A stretch of 64,000 bases of DNA from Syncephalis fuscata S228 (lineage: Eukaryota; Fungi; Zoopagomycota): positions 1 through 64,000 of the forward strand of contig JAHLTZ010000026.1 in assembly GCA_025786725.1 (NCBI GenBank). Direction: 5' to 3'. Under the pieces are notes generated by a model. That model worked only from the letters and a program-made list of their open reading frames with translations, did no database searches and was not told the origin of the DNA. Below are positions 5,886-61,133 of this stretch, piece by piece (positions within the stretch are counted from its first letter, which is position 1; every line of letters starts with the position of its first letter). A program made the translations under genes and the position numbers.

Positions 5886-7163
5886 ATTGCTCTTATTGTA
5901 ATATGCCAACGTTTACAAAATAAAAAGTTTTTTAATTTAATTTAATTAATAATAATAATATAGAATGATATTCTGAAATAAAACATCAATTATAAGCATA
6001 AATAAGTACAAAGAATATGAGCCAAAAGGTTTAAATATTTTTTATTGATAACAAAAACGAACAATTATATAAATAGATTTTGTTTAAGTAAAGAATGATG
6101 CTTGAAATGTGAATAAAAGTGCGCAATTACAATTATTGGCATTTTTTGTTTAAATTGGTGTTAATTATTACATTTATACCATCGTGAACGAGTTTTATAG
6201 CAGCAATACAAGCCTACAGATCATTTGTCTAATTTTTATTTGAGCTGATGAATAATACAAAATTGCTTTAATTATTAACATTTACATTTTGGAAGAACTT
6301 ATTCACAAGTGATTAACTGAAGTTACAATGTAGTGTTTTCGTTTTCTTATACTTAATTACAGCATATTGATTGGTGATGTTCGACTACTTGCGTTGTTCA
6401 TTCATCCCAATGACATTCACTGTTCATTTTCATCCATCTTGCTTCCTTTCCACTTAATATCCTTTGTCTCTAGCAGTATCATTGACTAGTACGCACACTC
6501 GGTTCATTTAATATACAATTGTTTAACTAGCTAAATTGAATAACATTATAGCCAACATAAAAGTGCCAATTATACAATGTTCAATGATACAGTATCTATT
6601 TCACAACATTGCATACATTCAAGTCAAATGATATAGTAACGTTGTTATATACAATCTATATCGTTCGTGAATAAGCAGTAATTTAGTAGTAGTTTGTGTT
6701 AATCAAATGGCGACTTTATTAAGTAATAATGACTACATACTAATTGCTATTTAAATAACAATGCTATTACAATCACTTTAGTTTACATTGTTCACTAACA
6801 TAGCGTATTTTTACAAGTATATTGTCAATATATTTAATCAATTAATGTTAGTCTTTGTAAGCAAATAGAATATAAACATAGCTATAATAGCTTAATCAAA
6901 CACAATTAAGATGGAACCACATGTTTATTACTACAAGTTTGCATACTTGATTGTATACAGACAAATACAGACTTGTTGGTAATATAAGAAATCCATCGAT
7001 TAAGGGTTGAATAAACCAGGGCATTGGCTGGGACTTGGTAGCTGAGTGGGCTGAGTGGTGTAGTTGTCAAATGATCTTGATTCTTGCCGAATATATACCT
7101 AAAATATATATAACTCGCAGTCCAATCATACTATCAGTGCCAATATTTTGAATGCGCCAGTTA

Positions 7164-9045
7164 TTCTATAGTCATGAGCACATATAAAATATTATATGGT
7201 TAGCGTATGAGTTAGCATTATATGATTCTACTTACAATCTATTAATACAAGGCATCAAACACGTAAAGTGTACAGTATATATTTAATGCATCGTCAATAA
7301 TATACAGTATTACTTACGAGCTATTAATACAAGTCATCAAACACAAAGAATATGATGGTTGTTTAACGTATAGCCAATTAATATACAATGCCACTTACAT
7401 TCTATTATGTTAAGTTATTGATAAGCACAATACAAGTATATAATTAGTGTATAGCCAGTTAATATACAATACCATAATTGTTAAGTGAAACCCCCCTCCC
7501 TGTTTTTTAGGTAAAACAATATGCAAGCCAGTTTAAACAAGTAGGTCCAAAAACAAGACCTTGGCCAGAATAGCCAAGGAAAAACAATTAGGACCAACTT
7601 CAAGAGAATAGTGCTGTGTAGCACCATTCAAAAAAAGATGGTCCCGCATGAGATCTATATGGACCGGATTTTGCGCAAAAACGTAGCAGTCCACCCGTTA
7701 AAAGTTTGGAAAAGTCCAAAAATAGTGGGAAGCAGCGCAAATGCTTTAATTATGTGCAGCGGGGGCTCACAAGCTTTTCAAAATAAAATAAAAAATATAA
7801 TATAATATTACTTACTGCCTATTAATAAAAGTCATCAAACACGCAAAATGTACGGTATGTATTTAGTGCATAGTCAATTAATATACAATAACACTTACCC
7901 TCTATTAATACAAGTCATCAAACACGTAAAGTGCACGGTATATGCTTAGTGTATAGTCAATTAATATATAATACTACTTACGACCTATTAATACAAGCCA
8001 TCAAACACACAAAATGTACAAATATGTTTAGTGCATAGTTAATCAATATATAATGCCACTTACCAACTATTAATACAAGTCATCAAACGCAAAAAGTGCA
8101 CAGTATATAATTAATGCATAGTCAACTAATATACAATACTACTTACAACCTATCAATACAAGTCACCAAACACACAAAATGTACGGCATATGTTTAGTGC
8201 ATAGTCAATCAATATATAACATTACTTACCAACTATTAATACAAGTAATCAAACACGCAGAATGTACGGTATATATTTAGTGCATAGTCGAGCAATATAC
8301 AATGTCACTTACAAGCTATTAATACAAGTCATCAAACACGCAAAGTGCACAGTATATATTTAGTGCATAGTCAATCAATGTACGATATCACTTACGAGCT
8401 ATTAATACAGGTTATCGAACACACAAAGTGCACAGTATATATTTAGTGCATAATCAATTAATTATTACTATTGCTATTTACCTCCTATTAATACGAGTAA
8501 TCGAACACACAAAGTGCACAGTATATATTTAGTGCATAATCAATTAATTATTACTATTGCTATTTACCTCCTATTAATACGAGTAATCGAACACACAAAG
8601 TGCACAGTATATATTTAGTGCATAATTAATTATTATTCATATTGTTATTTACCTCCTATTAGTATAGATAGGCAATGTTAGTATCAGCAATATAATTTGT
8701 TTTATATTAAACCTACTTTTAACCAATGGTGCTATTTTATTTGTTTTACATTAAAAACAACAATTAATTATTATGCCAATAACTATGTGCAATCAACAAT
8801 TACCATCTATTTGCCATGTCCATTATTTGGATAACATACGATAAGCGCTGGAATAATGAGTCAATAATTGCGACTTACCATCTAATATTATCGTTGGTTA
8901 AACATAATGTTAGCAAACATTTCAAATTTCAAATTTATGACTACAACATACCACGACGAACCAAAGTTGGCTTAGCATCCACCATGGCTGTACTGGCTAC
9001 AAGGGCCACGAGGACGGTGCAGACGACGGCAATAAAAAGCTTCAT
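7164..9045 (-). CDS. Micro-exon secreted peptide gene, locus A (52 aa: MKLFIAVVCTVLVALVASTAMVDAKPTLVRRDDAPLVKRGGAPFGFGQGKSH)
   Basis: Exon 1 is 9045-8952. 3-nt exons ATG 8881, ATG 8806; a 15-nt exon 8731-8717; then 3-nt exons starting at 8655 GAG, 8570 GAG, 8484 GAG, 8398 CTC, 8315 CTT, 8232 TTG, 8149 GTT, 8066 TTG, 7984 GTC, 7901 AGG, 7818 GCA, 7401 AAT, 7320 CTC, 7238 ATT. The last exon starts at 7165 (AA TAA). All are flanked by AG and GT. Confidence 0.8.
7166..8716 (-). repeat. Tandem array of ~82-86 bp units, each one intron plus a 3-nt exon (locus A)
   Basis: On the plus strand, (C/T)TTAC-NNN-CTAT recurs about every 83 bp with a shared core TTAATACAAGTCATCAAACAC...TTAGTGCATAG. On the minus strand this reads GTAAG...TAG. 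Confidence 0.92.
7475..7800. mobile_element. ~330-bp insertion inside one intron of locus A, possibly MITE-like
   Basis: Breaks the 83-bp period between exons 7818 and 7401. It is more GC-rich and has imperfect inverted ends GTGAAACCCCC (~7485) and GGGGGCTCAC (~7770). Confidence 0.45.
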
Positions 9046-9418: not shown

Positions 9419-10165
9419 CAACCTGTTTGGCTTTTGCTCAGATGACGCGGCGAACCTAACCACCTGGTACATCTATGGTAGAAATTTGTGTACTATTCTT
9501 TACAATATCGTACATGGTTTGAACATGTAATGCAAACCAAATCCATTGATTCTATAGAAGCAATAATGATACGCCTTTGTGTTCTTGCTATTGCTTTTAC
9601 CGAAAAATTAATCCCCAACTTGACCGTAAGATGCAAACTGAAACAACTGGTTCTACAAAAATAATGATGCTCCGTTGTTGTTTCTTTACTTTAACCTGCT
9701 TACCATTTGCACAAAGGACCCGACAATCTCAATCATTCAGTACACCTATGGTAGAAATTCGTGTACTATTCTTTACAATATCGTACATGGTTTGAACATG
9801 TAATGCAAACCAAATCCATTGATTCTATAGAAGCAATAATGATACGCCTTTGTGTTCTTGCTATTGCTTTTACCGAAAAATTAATCCCCAACTTGATTGT
9901 AAAACGCAAACTGAAACAACTGGTTTTACAGAAATAATGATGCTCCGTTGTTGTTTCTTTACTTTAACCTGCTTACCATTTGCACAAAGGACCCGACAAT
10001 CTCAATCATTCAGTACATCTATGGTAGAAATCCATATACTAATATTTACTGCACTATGCATGATTTGACCATACAATACAAACTGAGTCTATTGGTTCTA
10101 TAGAAGCAGTAGTAACACAACAATGTGTTTTGCTGTTGCTTTTACCGAAACATTTTAATCCCCAA
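9419..10165. repeat. 273-bp tandem repeat (~2.7 copies) upstream of locus A
   Basis: CTATGGTAGAAAT recurs at ~9473, ~9746 and ~10019. The near-identical ORFs at 9577 and 9850 are 273 bp apart. Confidence 0.88.
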
Positions 10166-13197: not shown

Positions 13198-14135
13198 ATG
13201 GGTCCTCGCACTAGTTTTAAGTTAAATACCGGCGCTACAATTCCGGCAATCGGCTTGGGTACCTGGCAGCCAGACCCGAAAACAGCAGCAACTGCCGTTC
13301 CTCATGGAATAAGTGTAGGCTACCGTCATATCGATACGGCCGCCATCTACATGCAAGAAACTGAAGTTGGAAATGCAGTAAACAATTCCAAAGTGCCACG
13401 AAGCGAGTTTTTCGTCACATCCAAGCTATGGAACAGTGAACACGATCCCAAAGATGTTCCCGTTGCTTTTGAGAAGACGCTAAACAAGCTTGGTCTTGAC
13501 TATATTGATTTATATCTTATGCACTGGCCGATAGAGTTTGAGAAAGATGTAAATACTGGTGAAGTTAAAATGCCCATTGAAGTTGTTGCAAAAAACGATT
13601 TTGCCGATACTTGGCGAGCAATGGAGGTATGTAGCCATTTTATTACTTGTACATATGTACTTATATATCTATATATTAGAATCTATTAGAAACTGGCAAA
13701 GTCAAGGCTATTGGCGTTTCCAACTTTACCATTAGCAATCTGAAGCATCTGCTTGCTAGTGCACGTGTAGTGCCAGCTGTCAATCAAGTCGAATTACATC
13801 CATATTTGCCACAAGATGAACTGGTTGAATTTTGCCATAGCAAAGGCATACACATGACGGCGTACAGTCCACTTGGATCTCAGGGTGCACCATTGCAATC
13901 GGAACCGATTATCGCGTCTATTGCAGAGAAGCACGGCTGCACACCGGTGCAAGTACTTATTAATTGGGCTTTAGCGCGCGGTACATCAGTAATACCCAGA
14001 TCCGCCAATCCAGATCGTATTAAGTCGAATTTTGTTGAAGTGCCACTAGACGACGACGACATAAAGCAAATAGCTGAAATTAAACGACGTGAGCGCTATT
14101 GTGTGTTTCCATGGACAGAGGGTGCCTTTGATTAA
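13198..14135 (+). CDS. Aldo-keto reductase (AKR1/GCY1-like), 2 exons
   Basis: Motifs IPAIGLGTW, GYRHIDTAAIY, FVTSKLW, DYIDLYLMHWP, NQVELHPY and AYSPLGS. Intron ~13627-13679. Confidence 0.95.
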
Positions 14136-14272: not shown

Positions 14273-17200
14273 TTAATACCATGGCATCCATACACAACTC
14301 ATTTGTGCCATCTTTTGTGGATTAGTTGCTTGAGCAATGAGATCCAGCAATGATTGATCTAATGGAACAATTTCACTAGATGCTACCGGTTGATCCTCCA
14401 GTTCCATGGCATCAGTATCGGACGCAGCTGCAGCTGTTCCAGTATTAATACCATTAACGTTGGCATTAGAAGCAGATGCTTGGTGTGTAGATGTTGTAGC
14501 TAAATGTTTCCATGCCTATTAATGACAGAATATTAGCAAATTAATAGATTAATAGAGAGAGTAACCTACCACATCTCGTTCTGTACGACATGCTAATAGC
14601 TGTATTTTACGCATCAATTGTCCTGTTGCCGCTTTAGCAGCAATGATGGTCGTGTGTCGTTCAGTTGACATATCATCTGATGTATCCATTTTGCCTTCAC
14701 CTCTCTCTTCTGTATCCATAGCCGTGGCCGTATCATTATCGTCATTATCATTATTGATCTTTGGCACTTCTGATGTACCACTCTCTTCTGCTTTATCGGT
14801 CACTTCTTGCGTAATAGCATCAGTCTCTGCTGCTGTAGTATTTGCATCTTTATTTGCCGTCGAATGACCACCTCCAGTCATTGTTGCCGATGATGCTGTA
14901 TTATTCCACGTGTTCAGTTCATCATAAACAAAAATATTTAATAAATCCTCGACTTCCGTCTACATGGATTATATTAGCATTCGTCATTTAACAGCCATTA
15001 TAATACAAACCTTTGATTCAACAAATGCATCGGCAATACATAAAAGTGAAGTAGCAAATACGCCTTCAAGTCCATTAGGTGTCATGAAATGCTGTAGATT
15101 GGGTGTCAATCGGAAAGGTACCGGCTCAGTAATATTGAAATCTTGATCTAATAAACCATATCGTATTAATATTGATGTCCATAAGTTAATAAATAAATAA
15201 GTAACTTACTTGGGAAGAGTTCAGCCGTCCATATATTGCCAGTGGACAATGAAACATGGTACTTGTGTGGATGACGAGCGTTAACACCAAGTACATGAGT
15301 TAGAAAAGTGCTGGTCGCCCATTGAGCAGTGAATCGTTTACGTAACATCCATAGATCGGCCGGTGTCTTTTGACGTGATGAAAAGTAACGAGTCAGTGTA
15401 TCAATTGGTACAAGTGTATTGGCGATAGATTCGACAATCTCGTGTTTAATACTTGGTATCATTGTTTTATCGTCACCAGTCAGCTCAGTAAGTAATTCCA
15501 AGTATTTAAAGACCGGTTCATCCACTAGAACATCCTGTCCATTTAACTGTGTCTCCAATGCTTCATGGAGTGTAACATAGGATGGATCTAGTTGTACCAA
15601 ACGTACTTGAGGGGCCAATGGCACAGTAACCGGTAGATGGAACTGTAATGAACGTCTACGTGTTTCCAAACGTCTTTCCAGCACACTGAGTTCAACCATA
15701 TTAGTGTTATTATTATTAATAAAATATTATTATACAGCTTACCCATTAAGTAGTCTAAATAGCTGCAATAAACGTTCTTCACGACGGCAGAAACGTGGAC
15801 ATGGATGTTGAATCATAAACGGATGAACTGTTCCATTATGACCACGCATAGCAATATGTCTAACAAAACTTGCTTGTTGTCGAATAGTAACTACAGTTGG
15901 TTCAAATCGCTCAATTCTTACAAAGTCATTATTATTATCCTTTAACTAGTAGATTCAATATTATAAATAACTATTACACTTAATAATACTATCTCTACTT
16001 ACTAGAACATATTGTCCCGGTATTTCTACATCATCGAATCGTTGATGTTCAAATTCAGTTAAATAATGTGAATAACTTTCTAGAGGTAATTCCGTTGGTC
16101 GTTCAGCCATCATGGCCACAAATGAATCGCGCCATTCACGTAAACGACGTACATATTGTGGCAGTGTTGGTTGATTCTCTACAAAATCACGTGCAAATGC
16201 CGTCTATACGATATTGATTATTAAATGACACCATGTAACTGCTATTCGCATACCTTTAATTCACCCGATGGTAATATGTCAGCAATACGTTGAATATTCG
16301 ACAATGAAGCAGTTGATAGAGCTGAATCTTTATCGTTATGCGATAAACGTGATGCCAATTGCTATATAACTGTATAAATACCTTTATAATATATACACTA
16401 TCAATAACTTACTTGAATACCATCGGTTAATAGTGCTACCAACAATCGATACATATCCTCTTCAGAAGTTGGCTTTAATCGAGCCAATATTTGATCAATC
16501 ATCGTTTCCATGGTTAGTGCCAGTAATGGATTAGTTGATTTAAGTATTGACATAATATCATCAAGATACTCCCATGGATGCTCACGCTGTAGAACATTTG
16601 TTGTTTGATTTGAAGTAGCTGCCAATGTTTCTGATGATTGCGATAAAGCATTGCCACTATTATTGTCTTTAGCTAGTGCTCCATCATCATCATCATCTTT
16701 ATCTACTTCATCTTTAACTGCATCATCTGTATCCATCATCATAGCACTGTCATCTTCTTTAATAAATCCAGCGGATTCAGCTGGTGTCGCCTCACTTGTT
16801 TCTGTGTCTGTAGCCGTATTTCTTGATAACAAGGTTGTTTTATCATCATTTATGCCATTAAATAAATTTATATTCTTGGATAGATTATTCATAGATGAAG
16901 ATGATTCAGCTGTTAGTGTTGTTGCAGCAGCAGCAGCAGTTGTTGTTGTTGTTGTTGTTGTTGCAGTTGTTGCAGATACAGAAGCTGACGTTGAAGGTGA
17001 TGGTGATACTGATTTTTTACGGGTGGATTTGGCCATTGATGGATTTCTACGTAAAACCATTTCAAATTCTTCTCTCATCGTCCGTAGTTGATAATGCAAT
17101 GCCTATTAAATACATACATATTAATAACTATACCTATAATTAATAGCTATCTAAACAACTTACTTGTGGGAATGATTTGGCAATACGCTCAAGTACTAGG

Positions 17201-20200
17201 CGAGCATGTCTAGCTGTACGGCTTGATAGTTGACTTAATAATTGCGGTATAAATGTAAGCCAGTACCAAATAGCCACATCACCTTTAAACGTTTCAAACG
17301 TTTTGGCCACTGTGCCCTGCTGATCATCCGAAGCAAGTAGCCATAGAATGCGTGCAATATGGCGACGTGATTTAGGACTACGTTGTAAGCAACATGCCTG
17401 TAAGTAGCAGTCCATCGCTCTACTAGCATATTCAATCTGATCAGGATGGTGCTGGAATAATCCATCCAAAAATCGGCCCCAGCTTGACCATGCTTTGGCC
17501 AAACTAAGATCGGCATTTGTGGCGGCCGCATAAGCAACATTTGCCTCATCGTTGCGTTCAAGTCGGGCTAGAAAATCACCTTTTAGCGTAAAGAATTCCG
17601 CCTTTTGTCGTACACCAAAATAGGCCAGATTCGTATTATTAATGACCTCAAGTCCAGAGGTCAATTCGCCCAAGTTCTTTAAATTACACCGTGCCTGTTC
17701 TTTCAATTTAATAAATGCTTCGTGAATTTCAATATTGGGCAGTGTGTAGATACGGGCCAGTTGATTAGTGCACACATCCAGCATGCCATGTTTACGTGCT
17801 ATTCTAGCAAATCGATTAATCATCCAGGCCATTTCATGATAGCCACGATAGGCGAGTGAACTACCCGCCACACCACTCGTCGCAGCATTATTAGCCGTAA
17901 CAGTCGGTGGCAATAATGGGCCCAGCGGTAAAAAGGTACGATTAACGGCACCAAACATCAATTGACGCCATGATACTAGATCACTCCATCGATTCATATC
18001 ATCCCAGTAATTGGGCAGTCGTTCACGCCATGACTGTAGTAGTGCCTTTAATTCTTGGAATCGGGCATCAAAGTTGTTGGCATTGGTGTCGAGTAATAGT
18101 GTACACATTTGACCGGCCTCTTGTAATTCAACAAACATTTGAAATACATGTAGCAACGAAACATGTGATCGATGTACGATAGGCGGTAATGAACGCCATT
18201 GTTGTAAGGCCAATTTCATACCATCGGCACACAATTGATGAAATACACTGGATCGATCTGGTTCACTTACACCACTTTCCTGTAATAGTAAAAATGCTTC
18301 CATACCCTTACGGCGTGGCGATTCAGGTAATACACGTAAACATTTGACCATCGATTCGGCTTCAAATTGTGGACTATCCATTTGACGCCATGCAGCATCC
18401 AGTTGAAGAGCTGGATTGTTTTCATGACGGGCCAAGTCATGTAGAATATCCCATTGCTGTAACTGTTCCGTTGTACGTATCCAATGCTCTTCCCATAGTG
18501 TATACTCGGCCTCAGTAAACGCTTGAATACCGCTACGGGCCTTTAATTGGGCTTGTTCGTACATTTGTTGTGCTACCGGCCATACACTACACTGTTCAAA
18601 AGAAAGTGCATTATTCGTTTCACTAAACATACAACGACGACGCCATAGTCCAAACATTAAATCATCTTCTGATAACTGCGTGTATAGTTCAGTTAGTGCA
18701 TCCAGCGTACTTTCACGTATTAATTCTTCACTACGATTCACTTCATCTAGACCATTTGTATCCATCGAGTGGCCATGTTCAAGATACTCAACGGCAACAT
18801 GCCATGCACCAAAATGTTTAGCAATGTACTTAACAAGCTGTGGTGGTAATCGAACAGCCGGTTGACATAGTGCAGCCGCTTCTAGTAATGCCTGCGGTAC
18901 ATTGGGACGTATGGCCGTTTGTTGCGACTGATACGGATTGGCCAGAAGTGGAATAAGCGATTTTGTAATATCGGTACGCTCTTTAGTCGACAATAACGGC
19001 CAACTATTACTAAATAATTCAATCCATGTATCATAGGCTATGTCATTGTTAAAATGTAACAGCTGTTGTAATGGTCGAATAAGATCAATAAGTGTCAGTT
19101 GACGTAGTTCAGCCATTAATTGGCATTGTTGTTCGACAATTTGCTGTAATGATGTATTTTGTTGCGCATTAGTCGCTATTTTAGCTGTCACTTTAGTTGT
19201 CGTTGTACTATTTGGTAATAAATTCGATAAAGATGATAGTGATAGAATACGTGTCTGGCTCATTAATGGTGCTTCTGGCACAATACCTGCTAATAGTAAA
19301 TCACAAGCTTGGGTAATCCAGAACTGTTTAGCAATAGCATCCCAGTGCTGTACACCTATTAAATAATACAATCGTGGGTAAAGACCACGTCCAGCACTTT
19401 TATGAAAAATAGTGGCAAATCGATTACGTAATTCTGGTTCGTTGAAACAAAGACCGGTAAGAAAGGCGTGTTCTAATCGTACAGTTAATTCAGTACGTGC
19501 AAATAATGGATTTTCATAAATATCAACGACCAATCGAAGGAATTCTTTCATTAATTCACGGTCTTGTCGTTGATCCAATGTCATCAACATTGACATTAGA
19601 TTGGCCTTCTCCTTAGTCGTGGGGAATGCTTCTTGATCATCTTTAATCCATTCGCGTACCATAGTAAGAATGGCCCGTAGTAGTTCTAGATCGGGTGACT
19701 TCTCTATTAACTGTATAAGTGATACGAGTAACCAGCGACGTTGATCGCCCAAATAAGAGACACGTGATTTGAGTAGACGTAATAATAGAATAAGTGCCGG
19801 TACTAAATGTTGATATTCAGGTGATGCTAAATTGGCCGATAAAAGCGATACTGAAGGCATTGTTGTACTGGTAGGACTAACAACAGTCGATAGTGGATTA
19901 CTACCGCTGACTGATATCAACTGAATATGCTCTTTAGTTAGTTTCTGTAATAGTTTACTAAGTGTTGGAATGAAACTATCTAGATATTCTGGTCGTGATT
20001 TACAACATGCTTGTAATAGAATAAGAGCAGCCCGTAAACTTTGACTATTAATACTAATACTTGAACCAAGTGTAGTTGAACCACCATTTGTATTACTGCC
20101 AGTAACAGTACCGGCACCACTCACACTACCGGTACCAGCACCGCCTGTTGCACCACTACTCGTACCACCCAATCCTTCTTGTAAAATAGTATCAATGGCG

Positions 20201-23200
20201 GCATAGAAGGTTGCCACTTCAACTTGAGCCTCATCTGGTGATGGAAGATGAGCGTATAATCGCGTAAGAATAGGAGCCATTGGTTCGCATAAATCAAGAC
20301 GGCCACTTGATAATGCTCGATTAAGTAGTCGTTGTAATAAAGCAATATTTTCAGTAAGCCAATTTGTCGGCTTTCGCTCTAATACAAAATCAAATACTTG
20401 AAGTGCCGCCCCTACACCTGCTACTTTATCTTCTTTAATTTCATCCATATTAGCAACGAGGACTACTTCTAAATAACGTAGATTAATGTCTACTGATTGC
20501 CAAGTAGACAGTTGCATTGCTTCTTTAAGCAAATGTAACGCTCTTGATGACATGTTATTAGGTGTAGCCGATGATGATGATGATGATGATGGTGGTGGTG
20601 ATTCAGCTGTAGCACATGTAAATTGTGCCAAATAATTAAGAATCATTTCTTTAAGCGTAGCATTTGGCGTATATTCATTAGATGGAATAGTTGGTGTAAT
20701 CGACATACTATTCGTATCATTACTATCTGTATCTTCACTTGGTAATGATGCTAATAGTTTCTTCTCCCATCCAAGCATTGTTTCTACTTGATCAAGGGTA
20801 AGTGCACGTGTCTCGGCCGTGGCAGATGGTACTAGTCCAAGTTTCGGTAATGTATTGACCATTTGAGGTAGGAAATATTCACGACAAGCATAGAATTGCT
20901 CAGCATGTCGCACGACTAACTGGTAAATATTGACAAGTTGCGATACGGTGTGGCCATCTTCAATAAGTACTTTACGGGTGTAGCGAGCCCATGTAGGAAA
21001 TCGATGATGATCACCAGGAGCATTGGCTAATCGAGTAGGCAGGGCCGGTGTAAGTACATCTAGTGCTTGTTTTACCAAATGCTTCGCCTCCGATTGATGC
21101 GCACGTAATAGAGCGACAAATATTTGATTAATAATCTTGGGCGGTGTTTCGAATGCTGCAATAAATCGAGCAATTAATACGTAGGCTGCTTGTTTACTCG
21201 TTACATCTTCTAAACGAATATTACCATAGGCGAATTTAATAACATCTTTTCGCATCAATATACGCTGTGGTACATATTGTACCATCATTGCTGTTAATTG
21301 CAATAATTCAATACGTAATGGGTCACCGAAACTCGATCGATCAGCATTGGCTGGTTGATCGGCTAATGGACGCCAGATACGTGTCTGTATCTCTTCGAGT
21401 GTAGGGGCATCCAGTATTTGATCAGCTTGTTGACGTACAAAAGTCGAAAGTAACATCGGATTCACTAGAATACGTAAGGCTTGAGTGCGTATCTCTTGGG
21501 TCTCCGTTAAATGAGCACTATTACTGGCGGATGATTCAAATAAACGTAAAAATCTACGTAAAATGGCCCGTTTACGTTCAGCTGTGCCACGAATGGCCAT
21601 TTCATCACACAAAAATGTTTGTAAAAAGGAGAAATCGACTACACTAGGCGTGGTAAATATATCCAATAAATCAAACAGTAAATCAACTTCATCAGGTACC
21701 CTCTGGCGTAGATCATTAGTGTTTCGGCTAATAAGCGTGATTCTTGTAACCGATGTAGATTCATATGTTCTTCTTGTTGTTGAATACGTATACGGCGAGC
21801 AGGTGTACGCCATAATTCAAGTAATCGATCTACTAAGTCACGATGTTCAACTAGCCATTCTGGATGTACAATACATAATTGATGTACAATAAGTACAAAT
21901 TGGAATCTAACTTCATCTAAATTGGCGCTATCATCGACGGTGGATGGAAATGCTCGAGCAATTAATCGGTCCGGTGATCGAAGCAGTTGCGATCTAAAGG
22001 CCGTTGCTTGTTCCATACCAAGTAGTCCAAGGAATAAGCGGCTCATAGCTGGTTCAGCCAATCGATTTAGGAAATAATCGATTGATTCAGAGGCATATCG
22101 ATTAAGGAATTTGATTAACGGTGCTCTAAATGGACTCGATGCATCTCTACGTAGCATTAATTCCATACGTAATGTTTCAGTTACTAAATCATTAAGGAAT
22201 ATGTTTGATGAAGCTGGCAATAAGTGAAATACATTCATAATAGCCACAATAATCTGCACTTCATGTACTTCAGCAAGCGATTTACCCGCTGCTTCCTGCA
22301 TTACTTGAGGATCGGCCCAACTCTTCATATGATCAAGCAATTTGTTGCCAATTTCTACTTTAAAGTAGCTAATTAGTAGCTCAAGTAATCGGGCCAGTCC
22401 CTCAAGGCCCGGCACCGTTAATCGTTTATGATCGGATAGATTATGTAGAATGGGACGTAGACCGGTTTGTAATAAATCTTTGGGTAATCGATGCTGTTGG
22501 GTAAGTACTTGTTGTAGGCCTTTCTTCGCTGCCTCTACCACTTCAGATGACTTGTTATAAAGTGATTTAAAAAATACTGAAATGATACGTTGTCTAACGG
22601 TACTTTGTCGTGGGGTAAAGAAGTCGGAACACGTCATGGCCGCCGATAGTAAACGTATACAAACAACACGTAAATTGACCAGAGAGGCCGCATTCTTATA
22701 CTGAGATGTACGACTAACAAGTGCTTGATCATCGGCATCGGCCAATGCCAGTGCTTCATGTAATAAACGCAGTAATTCATCATTACACTGTAGGAATGGT
22801 GGTCGTAATGATAAACAATAGGTAACGGCATCAATATTGCCAATTTGCATAGCAAATGGTAAAGCACGTAATGGTTTAGTGAATATAGGCCGTAATAATC
22901 GTTCCCGTACTGGATCAAGTAATTCAGTCACTTCGCACCCAGTAAGATCGGCGAGTAATTGGAATGAGGATTGAATGGTGTCACGTACGGCTGCGTTGGA
23001 ATTCGATAATTCAGTAACGAGTAATCCAACAAGATTGGTAAACTTTTGTTTACGCTCGGCATTCGGTTCACCTTCATCGGGTCGATTACATACTTTAAGC
23101 ACATGAGCTAGTGTTTGAGTGGCTTCTTCAACACCGCTAGTGGATAGTTCAGGTGATGCATCCTTGAGAATATACAGTAAAGCTTTACAGAAATCAAGTT

Positions 23201-26200
23201 CATGCTCAGCATCCATTGGGAGCCAAGATCAAGTTGGGCTGTTAATAGTGAAATACCCAGGCAGCCACCTCGTTTACGGAACCATTGTTGTGTATAACAG
23301 CAGGAACAGAAACGCATAGCCAATTGATGAAAGAATGGAATACGAACGGCCAATTCACGATCTGCATCTGTAAATGGTCCATCGGGTGATTCGGCCACAC
23401 AGTAGAGACAAGTACGATAGAATAATTGAAGGGATGATTCAGCCAAATTACGTAATTCTGTATCTTCATCAGTAATGACTCGAATTAACGTTTCAACAAA
23501 TACACTTTTATCAAGTTGAGTCGGTAATGATCGAGGACCAAATGGACCACCCAGCTTACCACTGGAACTACTCGATGCTTTCCCACTGTTGCTAGTAGTA
23601 TTGACGTCTACATCCATATCTTTATCCGATGATGTATCATTAGATTGGTCATTTAAACTTGATGATTTAGTAGTTGTTTGCGTAACTAGTTCTGCTGCAC
23701 TTAATAAAGCAAATTGTTGCGTTATTCGATCCAACATCGTACTTGCTCTATCTCGAAGCGATTTAGTGGCTGCACATCGAAAGAGTAAAAAGAGTAGACG
23801 GGCCAATTCAGCCTCTTGCGCTTGTTTAATGCGCTGCTGTTCACTATGATTGACTAGTGATGTAGCTGGTAATGATTTACTGGCCGTTGTTTCTACTGTG
23901 TCATTAGTTGAATTACCCGATTGTTGTGATGTTATTCTTAGCGCATCTGTTAATTTATGTGGATTGATGTTGGCATCTGATGTATCAAGCAGTAAAGATA
24001 GACAGCTGCGAATGAATAGATAGGCTTGTTCAAGACTGTGTTCACTCGCTTGTTGATCATCCAAAACAGTTTCTGCTACTGATATGTATCGTTCAATCGA
24101 TAAGGCTAGTCGAATATCATCGGGAAATAGCAGTTCAACGTTAAGTCCACTATCACTGGCTGGTCGGTACGAAAGTACTGGTGGATTAAGTAATAAACGA
24201 CGATTACGGCCGCCTAATTTACCTAGAATCCGCATTGTAGATTGGCTATATTGTTCATTTGTCGTATTAGACTGTAAATGGCTCCACAAAGCACGCATTA
24301 AATCATCAATGACCGGAGCCATAATTGGATCGAGAAAGTCTTGGGTCAAATTGTCAATACACAACTCGAGTGTACGTAATCCTTGGCTGATAAGTTCTGA
24401 ACCAGCTTGTAAGGCAATAACGAGCGGCTTCATAAGGAATGTAAGATAGGGCAATAGTACACTAAGTCGTACAGGTACTGTTAAACAGAGCTCAACGAAT
24501 AATTCACGCATTTCTTGTTTATGAGCCAGTGACAGTAGCGTGTTAAAGCTTTCCAATAGCATTTGCACAAGTGGCAACACCTCTTTGTATAACAGTTCAA
24601 ATCGACCACCACCAATATAGCGAAATAGTGACCGTAATAGTAGGAAATATTTTACGGGATCCTTTGCTTTGGCAGACATTTTCATACTTGACATAATAAT
24701 ATTGCCTAGATGTGGCTGTAATACTTCTTCATTCTGCTGTGGAAACCATGTTACAGCCATAAAGGCAAGTTTTAATAAGCGTAACATCGCTTCAGCACAC
24801 GTAGAATCTGGTCCACCCAATTTATCCAGACGTTCAACCAAAAAGTTAATTAAAATGCCCGAGAAGCTATGTGATACTGATTCATTGGCCAGGAAGCATC
24901 GAGGCACCGCTAGGATGGCTGAATTACCAAGAATACGTTCAAATAAATACGGCATTTGTGCAGTAAATACTTCTTGAAAGATTGCTGGATCAACGGTAAT
25001 AAATACATTGGCAAATTGTTCAAGCGTTTCTTTTTCTTCCTTTGATACTGGACGTGTCCATACGTCTGATATGGCTGATGTAGAAGCTGAAGATGTAGAT
25101 GATGGTAGTGTAGTTGAAGTAAATGTAGTCGTAGTAGAAGATGCAGTGGCGGGTAAACAAGTAGGCAATGGAGAATGAACAGTGGGTGTCATAGCAGTGG
25201 CAGTGGCAGTGGCGGTATTTGCCGTAGCTGTAGATGACAGAGTAGAACTATTTGTATTGCCTTCAGCAATTGACAATAAAGTTGCATCCAATACGTAATA
25301 GTCAAAACAGCGAATACCTTCATGGAATAAACGGCTGAATACGGCCATTTCTTCATGTGAAAACCCAACGGCTACATTGGTATTAGTAACAGCATGGGTG
25401 GTGGTTGTTCCTGTTGGGTTAGTGGCACTAGAGACAGATGGACCCGTTGAGGTAGATGCTGATGCAGGTGGATTTAATGATTTTAATCCAAACATAATAG
25501 TTTTTAATCCTGTAACTAAATTACGGAATAAAAATCGCATATCTATTGATAGATGATTAATATTATGGCATTAATAATATAAAGTGGTACCATCTACCTT
25601 TTAATGTGTCTAAATGACTTTCATTAGACGCTGCAGGTACAGCAATTGATCGATGTGATAGTAAATCTGCTTCAGTTTCTTCAATTTCTATCTTTTTTGT
25701 AAAATCAACCTCCATATGATCGTCAGTTTTGTTTATAGCTGAAGTATCGCGTTCATGTTCCATTGATTTTGAAGAAATTGTTAATGCTGTTTCTTTAGTA
25801 TCTGATTTACTATTAATACTAGAAGATGTTGTTGTTGAACTATTAGAATGAGCCGTAGACAACGTTCTCTAACAATTGGAAATTGAGAATTAAGGGTTTG
25901 GAATTTGTTTGTAAATGTATCAAGTATACGCATTAATAATTGACGACCTATAAATACATAGAATTAATTATTATTCCATTATTATTACTATAGTTCAATT
26001 TACTTACCTTCATTTCGATCTGGTAAATGCATAATACATTCAATAAGATTTAATAGTAATTTGGCACACATTGTCTGAATACTACTGGCCAGCGTATTAT
26101 CGTGCAGGTTACGAGAATACATATATACAGTACGTGACAATTGTGGTAAAGCTAGTTTGGCCCGTACATGATGTACAAGATCTGCCAACATACTGAATGC

Positions 26201-32879: not shown

Positions 32880-33919
32880 TTATTTTTGTGGTACCTCTAC
32901 ACCTAGATGTTCACCGACGACACAGTCGGAAAGTGTATTATAAGTAGCACGGGCCACCAAGCTGTGGCAGTAGTCTCTATCGGCCGCCGTGATGACAACG
33001 GTCATTTCGTCATCATCGTCGCCGCCGTTGTTGCCATTGTCGTTCTTGTCGTGCTCGTTGTAGTAGTTATGCTTTGGCTCCTCCTCCTTATAAGGCTTAG
33101 TTTCGTGCGATTCTTCCTCATGGTATGGCTTAGTTTCGTGCGATTCTTCCTCTTGATATGGCTTAGGTTCGTGTTTCTCTGGCTCACTGGTTTCTTCATA
33201 AGGCAGCACACCAGCTTCATCTTCATCCTTGGCCTTCTTGTGATAGTAGTAGCCGTATGAGTGCTTTGGTGAATGTTTAGGATGCTCCTCCATCGAGTGT
33301 TCTTCATATGGTAGAACACCAGTGGGTGGTGCTGTCTCTTCATACTTGGGCTCTTCTTTGTATGGCTTTTCCTCAGTCTTTGGCTTTTCATACTTAGGCT
33401 CTTCCTTGTATGGCTTTGGCTCTTCTTTGTATGGCTTTTCCTCAGTCTTTGGCTTTTCATACTTAGGCTCTTCCTTGTATGGCTTTTCCTCCTCCTTGTA
33501 TGGCTTTGGCTTTTCATATTTGGGCTCCTCTTTGTATGGCTTTGGCTCTTCTTTGTATGGCTTTTCCTCCTCCTTGTATGGCTTTGGTTCTGGAGCTGCG
33601 GTCTCCTCATAAGGAAGTACACCTGATGGATTTTCCTGATTATACAAATCATCCTCAGGCTCTTCATTATGTGGCTTTGTGTTATAATAGCCAGATTTAA
33701 CGTTAGTCTTGTGGACTAGGTGGTTATCTTTGGTTACTGAAAGCTTGTGGGCTGTTGGTCGTGCAATTCGGGAGACTTTGGCTTTGCCATGATGTTGTGG
33801 CAGTGCTAATTTGCAAATATGTCAGTAAAATGCTTAAATGTGGCTTAGTTATAATTACCCGTGGCACTTAACGCCGCCATGACCACGATAGTTGCAACAA
33901 ATAAAACATATTGACGCAT
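32880..33919 (-). CDS. Secreted repetitive Lys/Pro/Tyr/Glu-rich protein (KPYKEE repeats), probably a cell-wall or adhesive protein
   Basis: Signal peptide MRQYVLFVATIVVMAALSA at 33919, intron ~33859-33807, an apparent 1-nt frameshift near 33675, then KPYKEE(E/P) and GVLPYEE repeats and a 2-Cys C-terminus. Confidence 0.7.
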
Positions 33920-35310: not shown

Positions 35311-36040
35311 ATGTATATTCAATAGCCTGCATCAATAGATAGTAAGTAAAACTGTGTATTGACTATCCGCTCTAAACATATACCATGCATCTTGTATGTT
35401 TGATATCTTGTAATGATAGATCGTAAGCGACATTGCATATTGACTGACTATGCGCTAAATATATATATCGTGCATTATGTGTATCTAATAACTTGCATTA
35501 ATAGCATGTAAGTGGCATTATGTATTAGTTTTCATACTCTAAACACGTAGCATTCAATGTGCGTGTTTATTTTTTATTAATAGCATGTAAGCGGTATTAT
35601 ATATTAATTGTTTCTATACTAAGCATATATCATACACTGTTTGTGTCCTAATATTTATATTACCAGTCTGTAAGCAATGTTATATATTCCTGATTTATAC
35701 ACTAACTAGATGTGATATGTTGTGCATATTCATAAACACAGTCTAACGGGCTTTTCAAGGCATTGGTATTGGCAATGTGATTAGACGACTAGTTTGACAC
35801 ATTCCAGCTATACATTCGGCAAAACTCAAATCCATTGGCAATTGCCGTTCAGTCCATTCACATATCAAATTTTTAGCAATATTTTGGTTTATCCGCTTTC
35901 AACCAATAGCGCGATTATATTACTGGCAAACCTGCATTCAATTGTACCTATTCAACTATGCTAGCTTGTAGTAATAAACATATGGTTTTATTTTAGCTAT
36001 AATTGACTGAGTTTTCACAACCATGTTTACGGTTTATTTT
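35311..36040 (+). pseudogene. 5'-truncated inverted copy of micro-exon locus B (last five 3-nt exons, final exon and 3' UTR)
   Basis: Reverse complement of 57628-58357, near identical from 35326. Exons ATA 35339, ATC 35420, CAT 35505, CAT 35584, TCT 35667, and final TC-TAA at 35742. No signal-peptide exon is seen upstream. Confidence 0.88.
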
Positions 36041-36696
36041 AATTAATGATTAACAAATATTAATCACTTAAAAATGCCAATATTAAACCTGTGCAAATAT
36101 ATTGTTTTAGTTTTCAAGATATTCTGACTTATTTGTAGCAACATTCTTATTTAAATAATAATTTATTGTGTGATATTTTAGCCATGCATATCTACAATGT
36201 AGTAAAGTGTATTATTAATAATATCAAATCTATTATCATACAGCCAGTATCACTTTATATTGGCATTATTATATTAACACTTCAATTTCCAATAATTGAA
36301 CGGTACATACTGCCATTTCATTGCTGCTGAGTGAACTAAACAGTATAATAGCATTATAAAAATCTAAATATAAACTAATTAGTAAAAAGTTTGTTACTAA
36401 ATTTCTATTCATTTCTAAATGATGTGGATTGTTTATAGTACAATTAAAATGAAGCACCAATATTGTTTATTATTTACTTTGGCTGTACATATTATTATTA
36501 AACAAAAGCTATTATGAGACCAAAAATAATGAGCAAAGAATAAACAGCGATTATAATAATTAAATTGGTTTCCTTAAATATTTCTGAATATTACATTATA
36601 GTTGCAAGTTATGGAAGTAAATGATGTATTTTAATAATAGTAGATTATTGATATATGCGTTTGCTAATAACTGATAGCTTCATAGCTTGATAGCTT

Positions 36697-51747: not shown

Positions 51748-52140
51748 TTAACAGGCTACATTATTTTGTTGCCAAAAACTAAGAAATATGGCACCTTGAC
51801 GTGCCTCGCACCATCGATTAGATTGAATGCCATTTAGATTGATATATACGCTTAATGCACTGACAAGGTTTAAGTAATTGGCTGGGATGAATTCGCCGCC
51901 GCCATCTTGAGCTATCCGTGCGCAGGAAAGCCACTCGCAGTGCATTACTTGTTTAACTGGTGTTTTAGTCGCGGCCATACTTTCTCTGATACGATTTACG
52001 GCCAATGTTGTGTCTGAAACGGAATTAAAAGCGCAAAACTTGCCATTACCACAAACAATGTCTTGGGCGTTGACTAAGAGGGTAGATAAGCCTGTACAAA
52101 GCAGGACACAAATAAGAATAATGCTATTAATGATATTCAT
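51748..52140 (-). CDS. Small secreted cysteine-containing protein (130 aa), effector candidate
   Basis: Signal peptide MNIINSIILICVLLCTGLSTLLVNA. The mature part has 6 Cys and ends in Cys. Single exon. Confidence 0.7.
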   Translation of the reverse strand: MNIINSIILICVLLCTGLSTLLVNAQDIVCGNGKFCAFNSVSDTTLAVNRIRESMAATKTPVKQVMHCEWLSCARIAQDGGGEFIPANYLNLVSALSVYINLNGIQSNRWCEARQGAIFLSFWQQNNVAC

Positions 52141-53508: not shown

Positions 53509-54766
53509 ATGCGACTTTTATTGAAGGATTTCATTCAAACTGACAACAAAGGTCGTAGAAAATACTCAAATTTAATTATACTGGTAGGAATACTACTAGT
53601 GTTATGCTGCTGTTTTGCCAGTATCAAAGAGGTAACTATATTATAAATTAGCAACAAATACAGTACTTATACGACAAGTAGGTATCAGCCTTGGAGCGTC
53701 GTTCAATTGTTACAGAGCAGAATTACGACGCTTCTTTGACAGCAGTTGAAGCAGTACCAGCCGTTATAACCAATAGGCCATTACATGTTACACGGGAAAG
53801 TTCAGAAGATAGCAAAGAGACGTTTAGGCAAGAAGAGAAGCTACAGGCACACGATCAGCTTCATCATATTGCAGATGCAGATAAAAATGATCAATCTAAC
53901 CAACGTGCTACTGAATCAACAAGTGCACAATCGGTCAATTCGCCCATGCGTGATCTTACACTGTCATTTTTAATGATTTTGGGATCAGAAATTGGTGATA
54001 AAACGTTTTTAATTGCTGCAGTATTGGCAATGCGTCAACCGCGCCTTCTTATCTTTACTGCTGCCATGACAGCTATGATTGTTATGTCGGTGTTGTCAGC
54101 GCTATTAGGACATGTATTGCCTAATTTATTACCACGAAGAGCGGTCGATCTTGGTACAGGTATATTATTTTTGATATTCGGTGTAATGATGCTACGAGAA
54201 GGATGGGACATGGAAGCCGATGAACAACAAAAAGAGCTAGAAGAAGTACGTGCTGAATTGGAGGAAGGAGAATGGAACAACGATGATACAAAAAAAACAC
54301 TAGATATGGAGTCGGGAGATAGCCACAGTAAATTAAAAACCACTGGAAAATCAGAACTACATATAGTTGCCCGAAGATTATTGTCGCCAGTATTTGTTCA
54401 AACATTTATTCTTGTTTTTCTTGCCGAGTGGGGAGATCGTTCGCAGTTTGCAACAATTGCTATGGCCGCCGCACAGGTAAGCTAGTGAACAAATACAGTG
54501 CCGTTTTATTTTACTGATAATGTAATAGGATGTTACACTTACGATTATTGGTACCATAGCTGGCCATTCCGTTTGCACTGGTATAGCCGTCGTTGGTGGC
54601 CGTTTTCTTGCTCAGCGTATATCAGTGCGTACAGGTAAGCACAACAAACAATTGCATTGTAATAAAAGCTTACTATAGTCTATCGCCCATAGTAACTATA
54701 GCTGGAGCAGCGCTTTTCTGTTTGTTTGGTTTAATATATATTGTAACCAATAGCAACATAGACTGA
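53509..54766 (+). CDS. GDT1: GDT1/TMEM165 (UPF0016) Golgi Ca2+/Mn2+ transporter, 4 exons
   Basis: Both family motifs are present (SEIGDKTFLIA, AEWGDRSQ). ATG at 53509, introns at ~53632, 54477 and 54634, stop TGA at 54764-54766. Confidence 0.93.
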
Positions 54767-57149: not shown

Positions 57150-57921
57150 TTGTATTTAATATTGCTACCGTTGTTGCTGCTTATAGATATTAAAATAAAA
57201 AATAACATAAAGATAGATCTTGTTGCTTTATAATAATTATAAATTAACGACAACCATTAAGTAATTATAGCAAAATTTTCCATTATGACAATGTTTAAAT
57301 GTATTATAGCAATAACTTTTATTTAAATAATTATCAATATTAGCTAATCATTAATCTAGCATGTTTTATTAAATTGTACTAATGTATATATGCTGTTGCG
57401 ACTGAGATCACATATGCTTATAGCAATAAGTTTGTAGGTTCTTGTGATTATTTTAAATAAAATTGATGTTTACGTTAATTCATTAATTTGCAAACAAACT
57501 GAGTTGTTACGTTTTTTAAAACCAATAAATATGATATTATCCATAGTATAGCTGCAAATGAATACCACTGATTACATTGCTAATATGCATTGTTACAATT
57601 TCCAAATTCATAGTTACGAGTTGAATAAAAATAAACCGTAAACATGGTTGTGAAAACTCAGTCAATTATAGCTAAAATAAAACCATATGTTTATTACTAC
57701 AAGCTAGCATAGTTGAATAGGTACAATTGAATGCAGGTTTGCCAGTAATATAATCGCGCTATTGGTTGAAAGCGGATAAACCAAAATATTGCTAAAAATT
57801 TGATATGTGAATGGACTGAACGGCAATTGCCAATGGATTTGAGTTTTGCCGAATGTATAGCTGGAATGTGTCAAACTAGTCGTCTAATCACATTGCCAAT
57901 ACCAATGCCTTGAAAAGCCCG

Positions 57922-60303
57922 TTAGACTGTGTTTATGAATATGCACAACATATCACATCTAGTTAGTGTATAAATCAGGAATATATAACATTGCTTACAG
58001 ACTGGTAATATAAATATTAGGACACAAACAGTGTATGATATATGCTTAGTATAGAAACAATTAATATATAATACCGCTTACATGCTATTAATAAAAAATA
58101 AACACGCACATTGAATGCTACGTGTTTAGAGTATGAAAACTAATACATAATGCCACTTACATGCTATTAATGCAAGTTATTAGATACACATAATGCACGA
58201 TATATATATTTAGCGCATAGTCAGTCAATATGCAATGTCGCTTACGATCTATCATTACAAGATATCAAACATACAAGAGGCATGGTATATGTTTAGAGCG
58301 GATAGTCAATACACAGTTTTACTTACTATCTATTGATGCAGGTTATTGGATATGCATAGTTCATATCACATGGTTAGCGTATAGTTAATTAGTAGACTGT
58401 GTCGCTTACTAGCTGTTAATACAAGTTGTTAAACACACAGATCGTATAATGTATGCTTAGTATATAGCTAGTGAGTATACAATGCCACTTACAATCTAAC
58501 AATATAAGGTATTGGCCATACACAATGCATGGCATGTACTTAGCATGTAATTAGTGAATATATAATATCACTTACTAGCTATTAATATGTGTATTAAATA
58601 CACGTGGTTCATGGTATGTGTTTAGTATATAGGTAGTTATTATACAAATACACTTACAAACTATTGATATAAATTATTAGACACGCACAATGCATGGTGT
58701 ATGTTTAGTATATAGTCACTAATATACAATGCCACTTACTCCCTATCAATACATATTATTAAATATACATGGTGCATGGCATATGCTTAATATATAGCTA
58801 TTGCATACACAATGTCACTTACCAGCTATCAATACAGGATGTTGGGCATTATATGCCATGTCATATGTTTAATGTATAAATAAATGATATACAGTATCAC
58901 TTACGAGCTATTAATACAAGTTGTCAGACACAAACAGTGTATGGCATGCGATTAAAGTACAACTCGTTAATATACGATTCACTTACAAGCTATTAATCAA
59001 AATGATTGAACACACACGATACATGCCATATATTTAGTGTATAGTTAGGTAATGTACAATGCTATTTACCATCTATTAGCACAGATATTGCACACACACG
59101 CAATGTATGATATATTAATATTGTATAGCTAATTAACATACAATATCACTTACTTTCTATCGATGCAAATTATTAACCATATAATGCACGCCATTTTTTA
59201 GTAGATAGCTAATAGTATGCAATGTCACTTACGAGCTAATAATCCAAAGTATTGACCACATATGGCACATAGTATATGATTAGTATATAGCTATTAGTTA
59301 TAGAGCACAACTTACGGGCTACATTGCAAGTTATTAAACACAAACCGTGCATCTTATGTGTTAGTATTAGTTAATTAGCATGAAATGCCACCTACTGGCT
59401 TTGATACAAGTTGTTAGACACGCACAGTGCATAAAATATGTTTAATTTTATAATTAGTTAATACACAATGCTATTTACCATCTAGTGACATAAGATTTGA
59501 ATTATTGTAGCACATTTCATATGTTCAGCACATGGCTGACCAATATGGGATGCCACTTACCAGCTATTAATACAAGTTGTTAAAAGTTACAACACATGTC
59601 ATATAGTTGGCGCATGTCTAATTAGTATACAATTCCGCTTACCTCCTATTAATAAAGTCATTAGAGATTACATCACATGCCATATATTCAGCACATGGCT
59701 GCTTAATACAAATACTACTTACCAACTATTAATACAGGTTGTTAGGCATAAACAGTGCATGGCATGTAGTTAAAGCATAGATAGCCAATATACAGTTCAC
59801 TTACAGGCTAATAATACAAGATATTAAACATATATGGTGCATGGCATGTATTTAATATGTAGATAATAAACATACACTGCCACTTACATGCTATTAATAC
59901 GAGTTAGTAAACACACATCATCACATAGCTTATGCTTAGTGTATAGCCAAGTAATATATAGCGCTACTTACATTCTAATGCTGTTTTATTAAACGCACAC
60001 GTTGCATGATATGTGTTTAGTGTATCATTAATTAGTATATAGTTATACTTACCCACTATTGATGCAAGTTATTAGACATACAAAATAAATAGCGTATAAT
60101 TAGCGCATAAATGATTAGTACATAATGCTACTTACTTTTTATTAGTGTTATTTAGTAATGTAATAGCGTTTAACTAAATGAATAACTATCTTTTGTAATG
60201 ACAACATACCGCGACGAACTAGGACTGGTGTAGCATTCACCATGGATGTAGTAGCCACAAAAACTACAATGATAGTACAAACGGTGGCAATAGAAAGCTT
60301 CAT
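57922..60303 (-). CDS. Micro-exon secreted peptide gene, locus B (MKLSIATVCTIIVVFVATTSMVNATPVLVRR-[EM or V]ESSFGADATPQNASPGISNSNNPSFF)
   Basis: Exon 1 is 60303-60210. 3-nt exons start at 60138 AAA (acceptor reads AA), 60055 TGG, 59974 AAT, 59890 CAT, 59807 CCT, 59725 TTG, 59645 GAG, 59563 CTG, 59481 ATG, 59398 CCA, 59318 CCC, 59235 CTC, 59156 AAA, 59072 ATG, 58989 CTT, 58907 CTC, 58825 CTG, 58742 GGA, 58660 TTT, 58578 CTA, 58495 ATT, 58412 CTA, 58329 ATA, 58248 ATC, 58163 CAT, 58084 CAT, 58001 TCT. The final exon starts at 57926 (TC TAA). Confidence 0.82.
57927..60209 (-). repeat. Diverged tandem array of ~80-85 bp intron plus 3-nt exon units (locus B)
   Basis: TAC-NNN-CT recurs on the plus strand with ~82-bp period. 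Intron interiors are diverged while the splice dinucleotides and the 3-nt spacing are kept. Confidence 0.92.
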
Positions 60304-61133
60304 GGTAATACTAATCTGCTAAAATAAACAAGCGAGATAGACGATAGACTGTGGCTGGCAAAGAGTAGATAGTAGCGAGTATTTGGCAAACAGTAGAGTG
60401 TGATGATGAGGCCGCTGGTTGGTTGTGTGTATTGCATAGACTATTTAAATTGATGCTATTCTGGAGCATTAAAAAATATGGTGCATGAGGTATACCTTTG
60501 AAGTACAATGCAAACCAATTAAACACATGTATATTGGTAGAGCAGTGATATGATAGTATGTAGTCTAGCCCTTTGTTTAAACCCGTTCGGTATGTACACA
60601 AAAGATACGGGTAATAACATCCATTTTATCCATGTGTAGCAGCAATCCATATAGCAATTTTCATAATATTGTTACACAGCTAATCATGCGGTCTAAACCA
60701 AATCTATTGGCTGACTGCAAAAACATAGAGACTGCACAGCTGTGCCTTTGCTGTTGTTTTCACTGACAATCTCAATTTCCAGCATTTGCATGTACTTCAG
60801 ACAACGCTAAACATCAATGCGATACCAAACTAATACGCAGAAATTGTACTATGCGAACATCTACTACGTGAATAAAACAACTGCATTTATTTAAACTATA
60901 AAAATATTAATTGGTCTACATGTGCGTTCAATCTGACATTAAAATTATTGTTACAGAGATGAATAGCATATTTAATTTGCAAAAAATTATATTTTTACAT
61001 ATCATAAAACACGCCATACAATTATCAACATTTAAAATTGCTTTTGAAATTAGTCATTACACAATGTCACAGCTTTTCTACATTGATTTGTATTATATTA
61101 ATAAAAACACAAGTTTATTTTCAGCTGAATCGT

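Follow-up and report, generated by a model that had tools for sequence, protein, structure and literature searches.

The micro-exon genes (MEGs) of schistosomes have 10-20 exons per gene, mostly of 6-36 nt with a mode of 15, separated by introns of 0.1-5 kb, and the variation in their products comes from alternative splicing (PMC10526429, PMC5825161). One abstract gives exon sizes from 3 nt upward. Aphid bicycle genes form a large, fast-evolving family of secreted effectors encoded on many small internal exons of nearly one phase (phase 2 in the convention of the authors), contain Cys motifs that include a CYC motif, and are better identified from their gene structure than from their sequence (bioRxiv 10.1101/2021.09.24.461719). 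In fungi, 27 three-nt exons have been reported across 26 genes of Coprinopsis cinerea (PMC12230235) and the Trichoderma gene Xlr2 has a micro-exon (PMC11121469), and these isolated cases indicate that the fungal spliceosome is able to splice in exons as small as 1-3 nt. Arrays of one-codon exons were undescribed in a literature search that covered subscription journals only in small part.

We analysed a 64-kb stretch of Syncephalis fuscata DNA (the window) in which a minus-strand gene, locus B, very likely belongs to a large Syncephalis family of prepro-peptides that carry the mature peptide mostly on 3-nt phase-1 exons. Syncephalis fuscata is a member of the Zoopagomycota and parasitises other fungi. 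Like schistosome MEGs, the family belongs to a parasite, has a putative signal peptide and short symmetric exons for most of its coding sequence, and is hard to annotate; however, ~95% of the Syncephalis exons are 3 nt long, with up to 34 in a row, they are separated by homologous introns of 70-85 nt and follow an RR site, and isoforms made by skipping bear no sign of selection. Profile searches with the Syncephalis leaders and intronless members returned no match named as a MEG. As in aphid bicycle genes, the family is large and evolves fast, has Cys motifs and is easier to identify from structure than from sequence, and all Syncephalis internal exons share one phase, whereas bicycle proteins are longer and from insects, and tandem repetition is not among the features described for their introns. 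Bicycle exons also exceed one codon, and neither the paired CYC motif nor bicycle homology was found in the Syncephalis peptides, the motifs of which are CX2CX3C, CX3C and CX4C. The family therefore resembles both MEGs and bicycle genes in outline, and belongs to neither. Isolated fungal micro-exons are scattered singly in ordinary genes, in contrast to the thousands found in Syncephalis, which are consecutive and encode the whole mature peptide. A conserved pre-pro region, a dibasic site and a variable Cys-rich mature peptide are shared with conotoxin-like families and with mussel MgCRP-I (PMC4558851). With the alpha-hairpinins, which are helical hairpins held by two disulfides, there is a likeness only, formed of a CX3C..CX3C motif that is present in the joined product of locus L087 of S. 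pseudoplumigaleata, partly present elsewhere and absent from locus B, and of fold matches that lie below significance. Conotoxin-like, MgCRP-I and alpha-hairpinin families all have an ordinary exon structure.

The first exon of locus B (60210-60303, minus strand) is 94 nt long, comprises 31 codons plus a G and therefore ends in phase 1, encodes a putative signal peptide with a short pro-piece ending in ..PVLVRR, and is followed by a GTATGT donor, in agreement with the original prediction. The 5' flank (60304-60520), where the promoter and 5' UTR would lie, is common to the family and contains a TATA-like TTTAAATA near 60449-60442; it is 75% identical to that of locus A, the other family member of the window, and locally homologous to that of intronless paralogues, reaching ~220 nt upstream of the ATG. 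After exon 1 there are 27 more donors, 74-85 nt apart, with an AG exactly 5 nt upstream in 26 of the 27, and the array of 27 units of ~82 bp, 26 of them intact at AG and GT, was thus recovered as predicted. The exception is unit 1 (triplet at 60136-60138), where AA replaces AG, and this triplet is probably skipped in frame; L002 and L003, which are almost identical to locus B, have the same dead acceptor. The 26 three-nt phase-1 micro-exons (57999-60055) each lie between AG and GTA(A/G), with introns of 76-82 nt, and have their first bases at 60055, 59974, 59890, 59807, 59725, 59645, 59563, 59481, 59398, 59318, 59235, 59156 and 59072 (micro-exons 1-13) and at 58989, 58907, 58825, 58742, 58660, 58578, 58495, 58412, 58329, 58248, 58163, 58084 and 58001 (14-26). 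Of the 26 introns, 18 have a branch-point-like YTRAY 17-20 nt 5' of the acceptor. A last intron of 72 nt leads into a terminal exon that starts with TC-TAA (57922-57926), where two nt finish the last codon and TAA follows, a YAG-NN-TAA design found likewise at locus A, L009 and L030. The 3' UTR (57690-57921, AATAAA at 57695-57690) is common to the intronless paralogues, with local alignment scores of 120-209 compared with 24-32 for shuffles, and the stop codon of intronless L005, L007 and L022 is in register with that of locus B.

As the exons are in phase 1, each codon is formed of base 3 of one micro-exon and bases 1-2 of the next. The joined peptide, predicted to be stop-free up to TC-TAA, stands as written when unit 1 is included (EMESSF..), but its start does not hold if unit 1 is skipped, which gives 27 aa after RR, beginning VESSF.. 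and reading VESSFGADATPQNASPGISNSNNPSFF. This peptide is Cys-free and Ser/Asn/Pro-rich, making locus B a member of a Cys-free subgroup of the family, and the micro-exons account for all of the mature peptide, although for no more than ~45% of the precursor. In a donor-anchored alignment of the units, which have a mean mutual identity of only 64%, AG was conserved at 100/96% and GTAAG at 93-100% (1.6-2.0 bits), compared with ~0-1.4 bits (mostly <1) for intron interiors and 0.05-0.3 bits for the three exon bases. The original prediction had turned on AG and GT being better conserved than other positions of the repeat, as they are. Nevertheless, the joined frame is also open in 28% of shuffled exon orders, so that locus B, taken by itself, argues only weakly for coding and the proof lies in the family.

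It is conceivable, although improbable, that the family is real and locus B itself a decaying or silent copy, given its dead first acceptor, the near-identical copies (three) and a leaderless inverted duplicate of its 3' end at 35311-36044 on the plus strand, which is 99.3% identical and holds the last 5 micro-exons, the terminal exon and the 3' UTR. Against such decay, 26 of 27 units are intact despite the 64% mean identity of the introns, as are the leader, terminal exon and AATAAA, and comparison with L002 showed 22 changes in introns and 0 in micro-exons or splice sites, a difference that is not significant alone. We consider locus B likely to be an active family member.

Locus A (7161-9045, minus strand) has a leader exon of 94 nt at 9045-8952, 16 three-nt exons from 8881 to 7238 and an AA-TAA terminal exon at 7165, and its joined frame is open, giving 16 residues past RR. 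One of its introns contains a GC-richer insertion of ~320 bp (~7795-7475), the splicing out of which would leave the frame intact, and a 273-bp tandem repeat of 2.6 copies (9467-10165) lies immediately upstream of the locus. Elsewhere, the window contains what we take from their translations to be a TRA1/TRRAP-like gene (15166-25540, minus strand) and an aldo-keto reductase (13198-14135, plus strand), together with a retrotransposon integrase (149-1168, plus) and a GDT1 antiporter (53691-54485, plus). There are also two secreted-looking proteins on the minus strand, one carrying tandem repeats of 21-78 bp that are rich in Lys/Pro/Tyr/Glu (33002-33667) and one that is small and Cys-containing, with a leader unrelated to the family (51748-52140).

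Homologues of the leader are annotated as hypothetical proteins of S. fuscata, and the 29.4-Mb genome contains at least 150 leaders related to it (304 candidates, 150 scored). The leader is hydrophobic, 24 aa long with an A-x-A end, and conserved in at least 150 copies, with RR invariant in 15/15 aligned leaders. Scanning the genome for the array pattern, as the original prediction had proposed, yielded at least 2,482 adjacent pairs of micro-exon units, with 0 in the reversed-pattern control, and at least 93 loci in which a donor and then a first 3-nt exon come after RR-G. Most paralogues were viewed over 1.5 kb downstream of the leader, and array size varies between 10 and 34 units. In non-redundant loci, exon lengths were 3 nt in 230 cases and 6 nt in 12, with one exon lacking an AG; hence 242/243 are of 3 or 6 nt, all in phase 1-1. 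The family is characterised by a conserved signal peptide and RR site and a hypervariable mature peptide, and some copies may be pseudogenes, as degenerate units are present in L010 and candidate 2-nt exons occur. Public gene models leave the micro-exons unused; of 15 public protein models examined, none resembles a joined micro-exon product, and one (P0005) visibly runs through the intron sequence of L025. Leader exons and intronless genes served as queries in protein searches, while joined frames were computed locally, and there was no transcript-derived full-length product among the matches. The matches in profile searches were proteins of Syncephalis, metagenome proteins that share the leader, and a single weak match to a repeat protein.

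The codons formed across introns provide evidence for joining and translation of the triplets. There are 693 pairs in which the first exon ends in T and 349 in which the second starts with AR, from which 97 junctional TAA/TAG codons are expected, yet only 5 were seen (P about 4e-35 before correction for paralogue relatedness), at least two of them of the L009 terminal-stop type, whereas the same stops occurred 118 times in a wrong-frame control. Because paralogues are related, we repeated this with 16 non-redundant genes and found stops at 0/297 internal adjacent junctions against 15.1 in shuffles, while junctional Cys codons numbered 37 against 17.9. A frame 0 reading, with each triplet its own codon, was rejected, as the phase of the leader's end is 1 and coupling across junctions is seen in the phase-1 frame only; frame 0, too, is poor in TAA/TAG triplets, partly from the rarity of NTA codons. 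Genome-wide, exons beside a 3-nt unit were 6 nt long in 47 cases and 2 nt in 26, with none of 4 or 5 nt, and at least 6 of the 26 two-nt candidates were doubly called as 6 nt. In 6-nt exons the usual AG is lost and another lies three bases upstream, and terminal exons add exactly two bases and then TAA. About 20 of the genome-wide 2-nt candidates have no upstream AG to explain them and could be pseudogenes, assembly errors or compensated pairs.

Comparison with an intronless paralogue gave a further measure of joining. When joined, the exons of L025 spell CKCQDEDGNCTS; intronless L015 has CKCRDDDGYCTS, and the two are identical at 31/37 nt covering 12 junctions, compared with a mean of 18 and a maximum of 25 when the exon order of L025 was shuffled 5,000 times. 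For dN/dS between paralogues, close pairs offered too few changes and the units of distant pairs are not orthologous. At the level of sequence, these data show the frame, the joining of triplets in order and selection on the joined product, and the spliced gene architecture is in all probability real. The proposal of a fungal gene with 3-nt symmetric micro-exons that annotation had missed is therefore borne out by stop avoidance across the family, exon lengths and colinearity.

Among the 30 best-scoring leaders, nine lack an intron downstream of RR and run on into short, often Cys-rich peptides, which sit exactly at the position of the array with flanks in common. These intronless members retain the upstream flank over as much as ~220 nt, with the TATA-like site in it, and so are not plain retrocopies; they could either be ancestral or have lost their introns in place. 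In intronless L004, L015, L026 and L029 the ORFs extend ~12-30 codons beyond the usual family stop, into sequence homologous to the 3' UTR. The family is also found in S. pseudoplumigaleata, where L062 has a like leader type and 34 consecutive 3-nt exons in phase 1, spaced 57-89 nt apart, with units about 56% alike, and its joined frame is open and contains CX4C..CX4C. A homologue search with the S. pseudoplumigaleata leader gave no matches. We also considered whether the arrays are non-coding minisatellites or tandem mobile units with chance AG-NNN-GTAAG motifs, situated downstream of short single-exon peptide genes. Tandem Repeats Finder does report parts of them as an 82-83-bp repeat, and the micro-exons are absent from public gene models. 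However, a minisatellite would account neither for frame-specific avoidance of stops across 80-nt spacers nor for exon lengths quantised at 3 or 6, terminal stops in register, colinearity with an intronless paralogue and retention in a second species with introns only ~55% alike, and we regard this explanation as extremely improbable.

The original prediction further saw a MEG-like system. On that view, skipping of micro-exons would diversify the product and make a peptide library in which each skip drops one residue and recodes its neighbour. All exons are symmetric, so the frame survives any skip, only 1/26 single skips at locus B yields a stop, dead acceptors are tolerated (locus B unit 1, L010), and schistosome MEGs operate in this way (PMC5825161). 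However, across the 16 non-redundant genes, skip-one, skip-two and skip-three junctions held 17, 14 and 14 stops where 14.4, 13.5 and 12.8 were expected by shuffling, and Cys codons were depleted at skip-one junctions (7 vs 16.9), their enrichment being confined to adjacent junctions; skipping would also disrupt Cys spacing. As stops are absent from adjacent junctions and occur at the random rate in skip junctions, selection acts on the complete in-order splice product. Diversification by skipping is therefore unlikely and this part of the prediction is not supported, although low-level skipping may occur in sequences that appear tuned for the full product.

Diversity more likely arises in DNA than by alternative splicing, judging from the sequences of the repeats. 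Near-identical introns (up to 100%) are found within single genes, which indicates recent unit duplication, and 36/43 near-identical intron pairs precede different triplets, which is consistent with unit duplication, unequal exchange and conversion. Through tandem duplication, unequal crossing-over and conversion, the homologous introns would let arrays lengthen, shorten and swap codons, with the frame always kept. During expression, the 70-85-nt introns would each be recognised singly by intron definition (GTAAGT and a branch point ~17-20 nt before YAG), and since a 3-nt exon is too small for complexes on both sides, they would be removed sequentially, with every step lengthening the upstream exon by 3 nt, and splicing would be mostly constitutive.

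Judging by its motifs, the precursor would be secreted and cut after RR by a Kex2-type protease to release peptides of ~10-40 aa, many of which may form paired-Cys helical hairpins. The model of intronless member P0003 is a helical hairpin (pLDDT 84), and its fold matches are weak, with a Jug r 2 fragment at Z 3.3, nigellin-1.1 at Z 2.7 and all Z at or below 3.5, below significance. Pfam, Foldseek and VIA searches with family peptides gave nothing significant, and no Pfam family. It seems somewhat probable that the peptides act at the fungal-host interface or against microbial competitors.

A three-unit pattern search matched 23 metagenome contigs. Twelve soil contigs of ~40% GC (L064, L066, L067, L069, L071, L075, L077, L080, L081, L083, L084 and L086) have an intron consensus distinct from that of Syncephalis, are in phase 0 with up to 34 units of ~78 nt, and encode Tyr/Asp/Gly-rich peptides, with stop triplets at 0/345 against 9.8 expected; signal-like leaders ending in EAR or KAR are present in L064 and L084. 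The source organism or organisms of these phase-0 arrays are unrelated to Syncephalis. Four others (L076, L078, L082 and L085) are of 17-20% GC with ~91-nt units, are open only in phase 1 and are Asp/Tyr/Asn-rich, and a kinase gene that lies next to the array in one of them, of a type known from arbuscular mycorrhizal fungi, suggests such a lineage as their probable source. A short 3-nt exon array with yet another intron consensus is found at L073:2775-3264, on a contig with a retroelement-like ORF. The matches L065, L070, L072, L074 and L079 are tandem repeats without variation between units and were discarded. We tentatively propose, at somewhat under even chances, that these exons act as codon cassettes, in which the repeated 80-nt introns serve as recombination arms and permit secreted peptides to be lengthened, shortened and reshuffled residue by residue without frameshift, and that such cassettes have arisen independently in at least three fungal lineages, namely Syncephalis (phase 1), the soil fungus with phase-0 Tyr/Asp/Gly-rich arrays and the AT-rich, probably arbuscular-mycorrhizal lineage (phase 1).

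With 34 consecutive 3-nt exons, these genes are a limit case of split genes and a natural test of the spliceosome on exons below the size for exon definition or two-sided assembly, with respect to removal order, fidelity and skipping rate. Tandem duplication can here create an intron along with each codon, and one gene appears able to pass between an intron-rich and an intronless form. A simple search pattern already detects similar arrays in other soil fungi, and repeat masking and short-read aligners would conceal such genes everywhere. These arrays are a newly seen, extreme form of micro-exon genes, and would be a new kind if codon shuffling and independent origins hold; if the codon-cassette reading is true, they imply that fungi harbour an overlooked class of peptide genes that satellite masking conceals. 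For Syncephalis itself, the family amounts to about a hundred unannotated secreted peptides of a mycoparasite, many of them disulfide-rich, which are candidate host-interaction or antimicrobial molecules.
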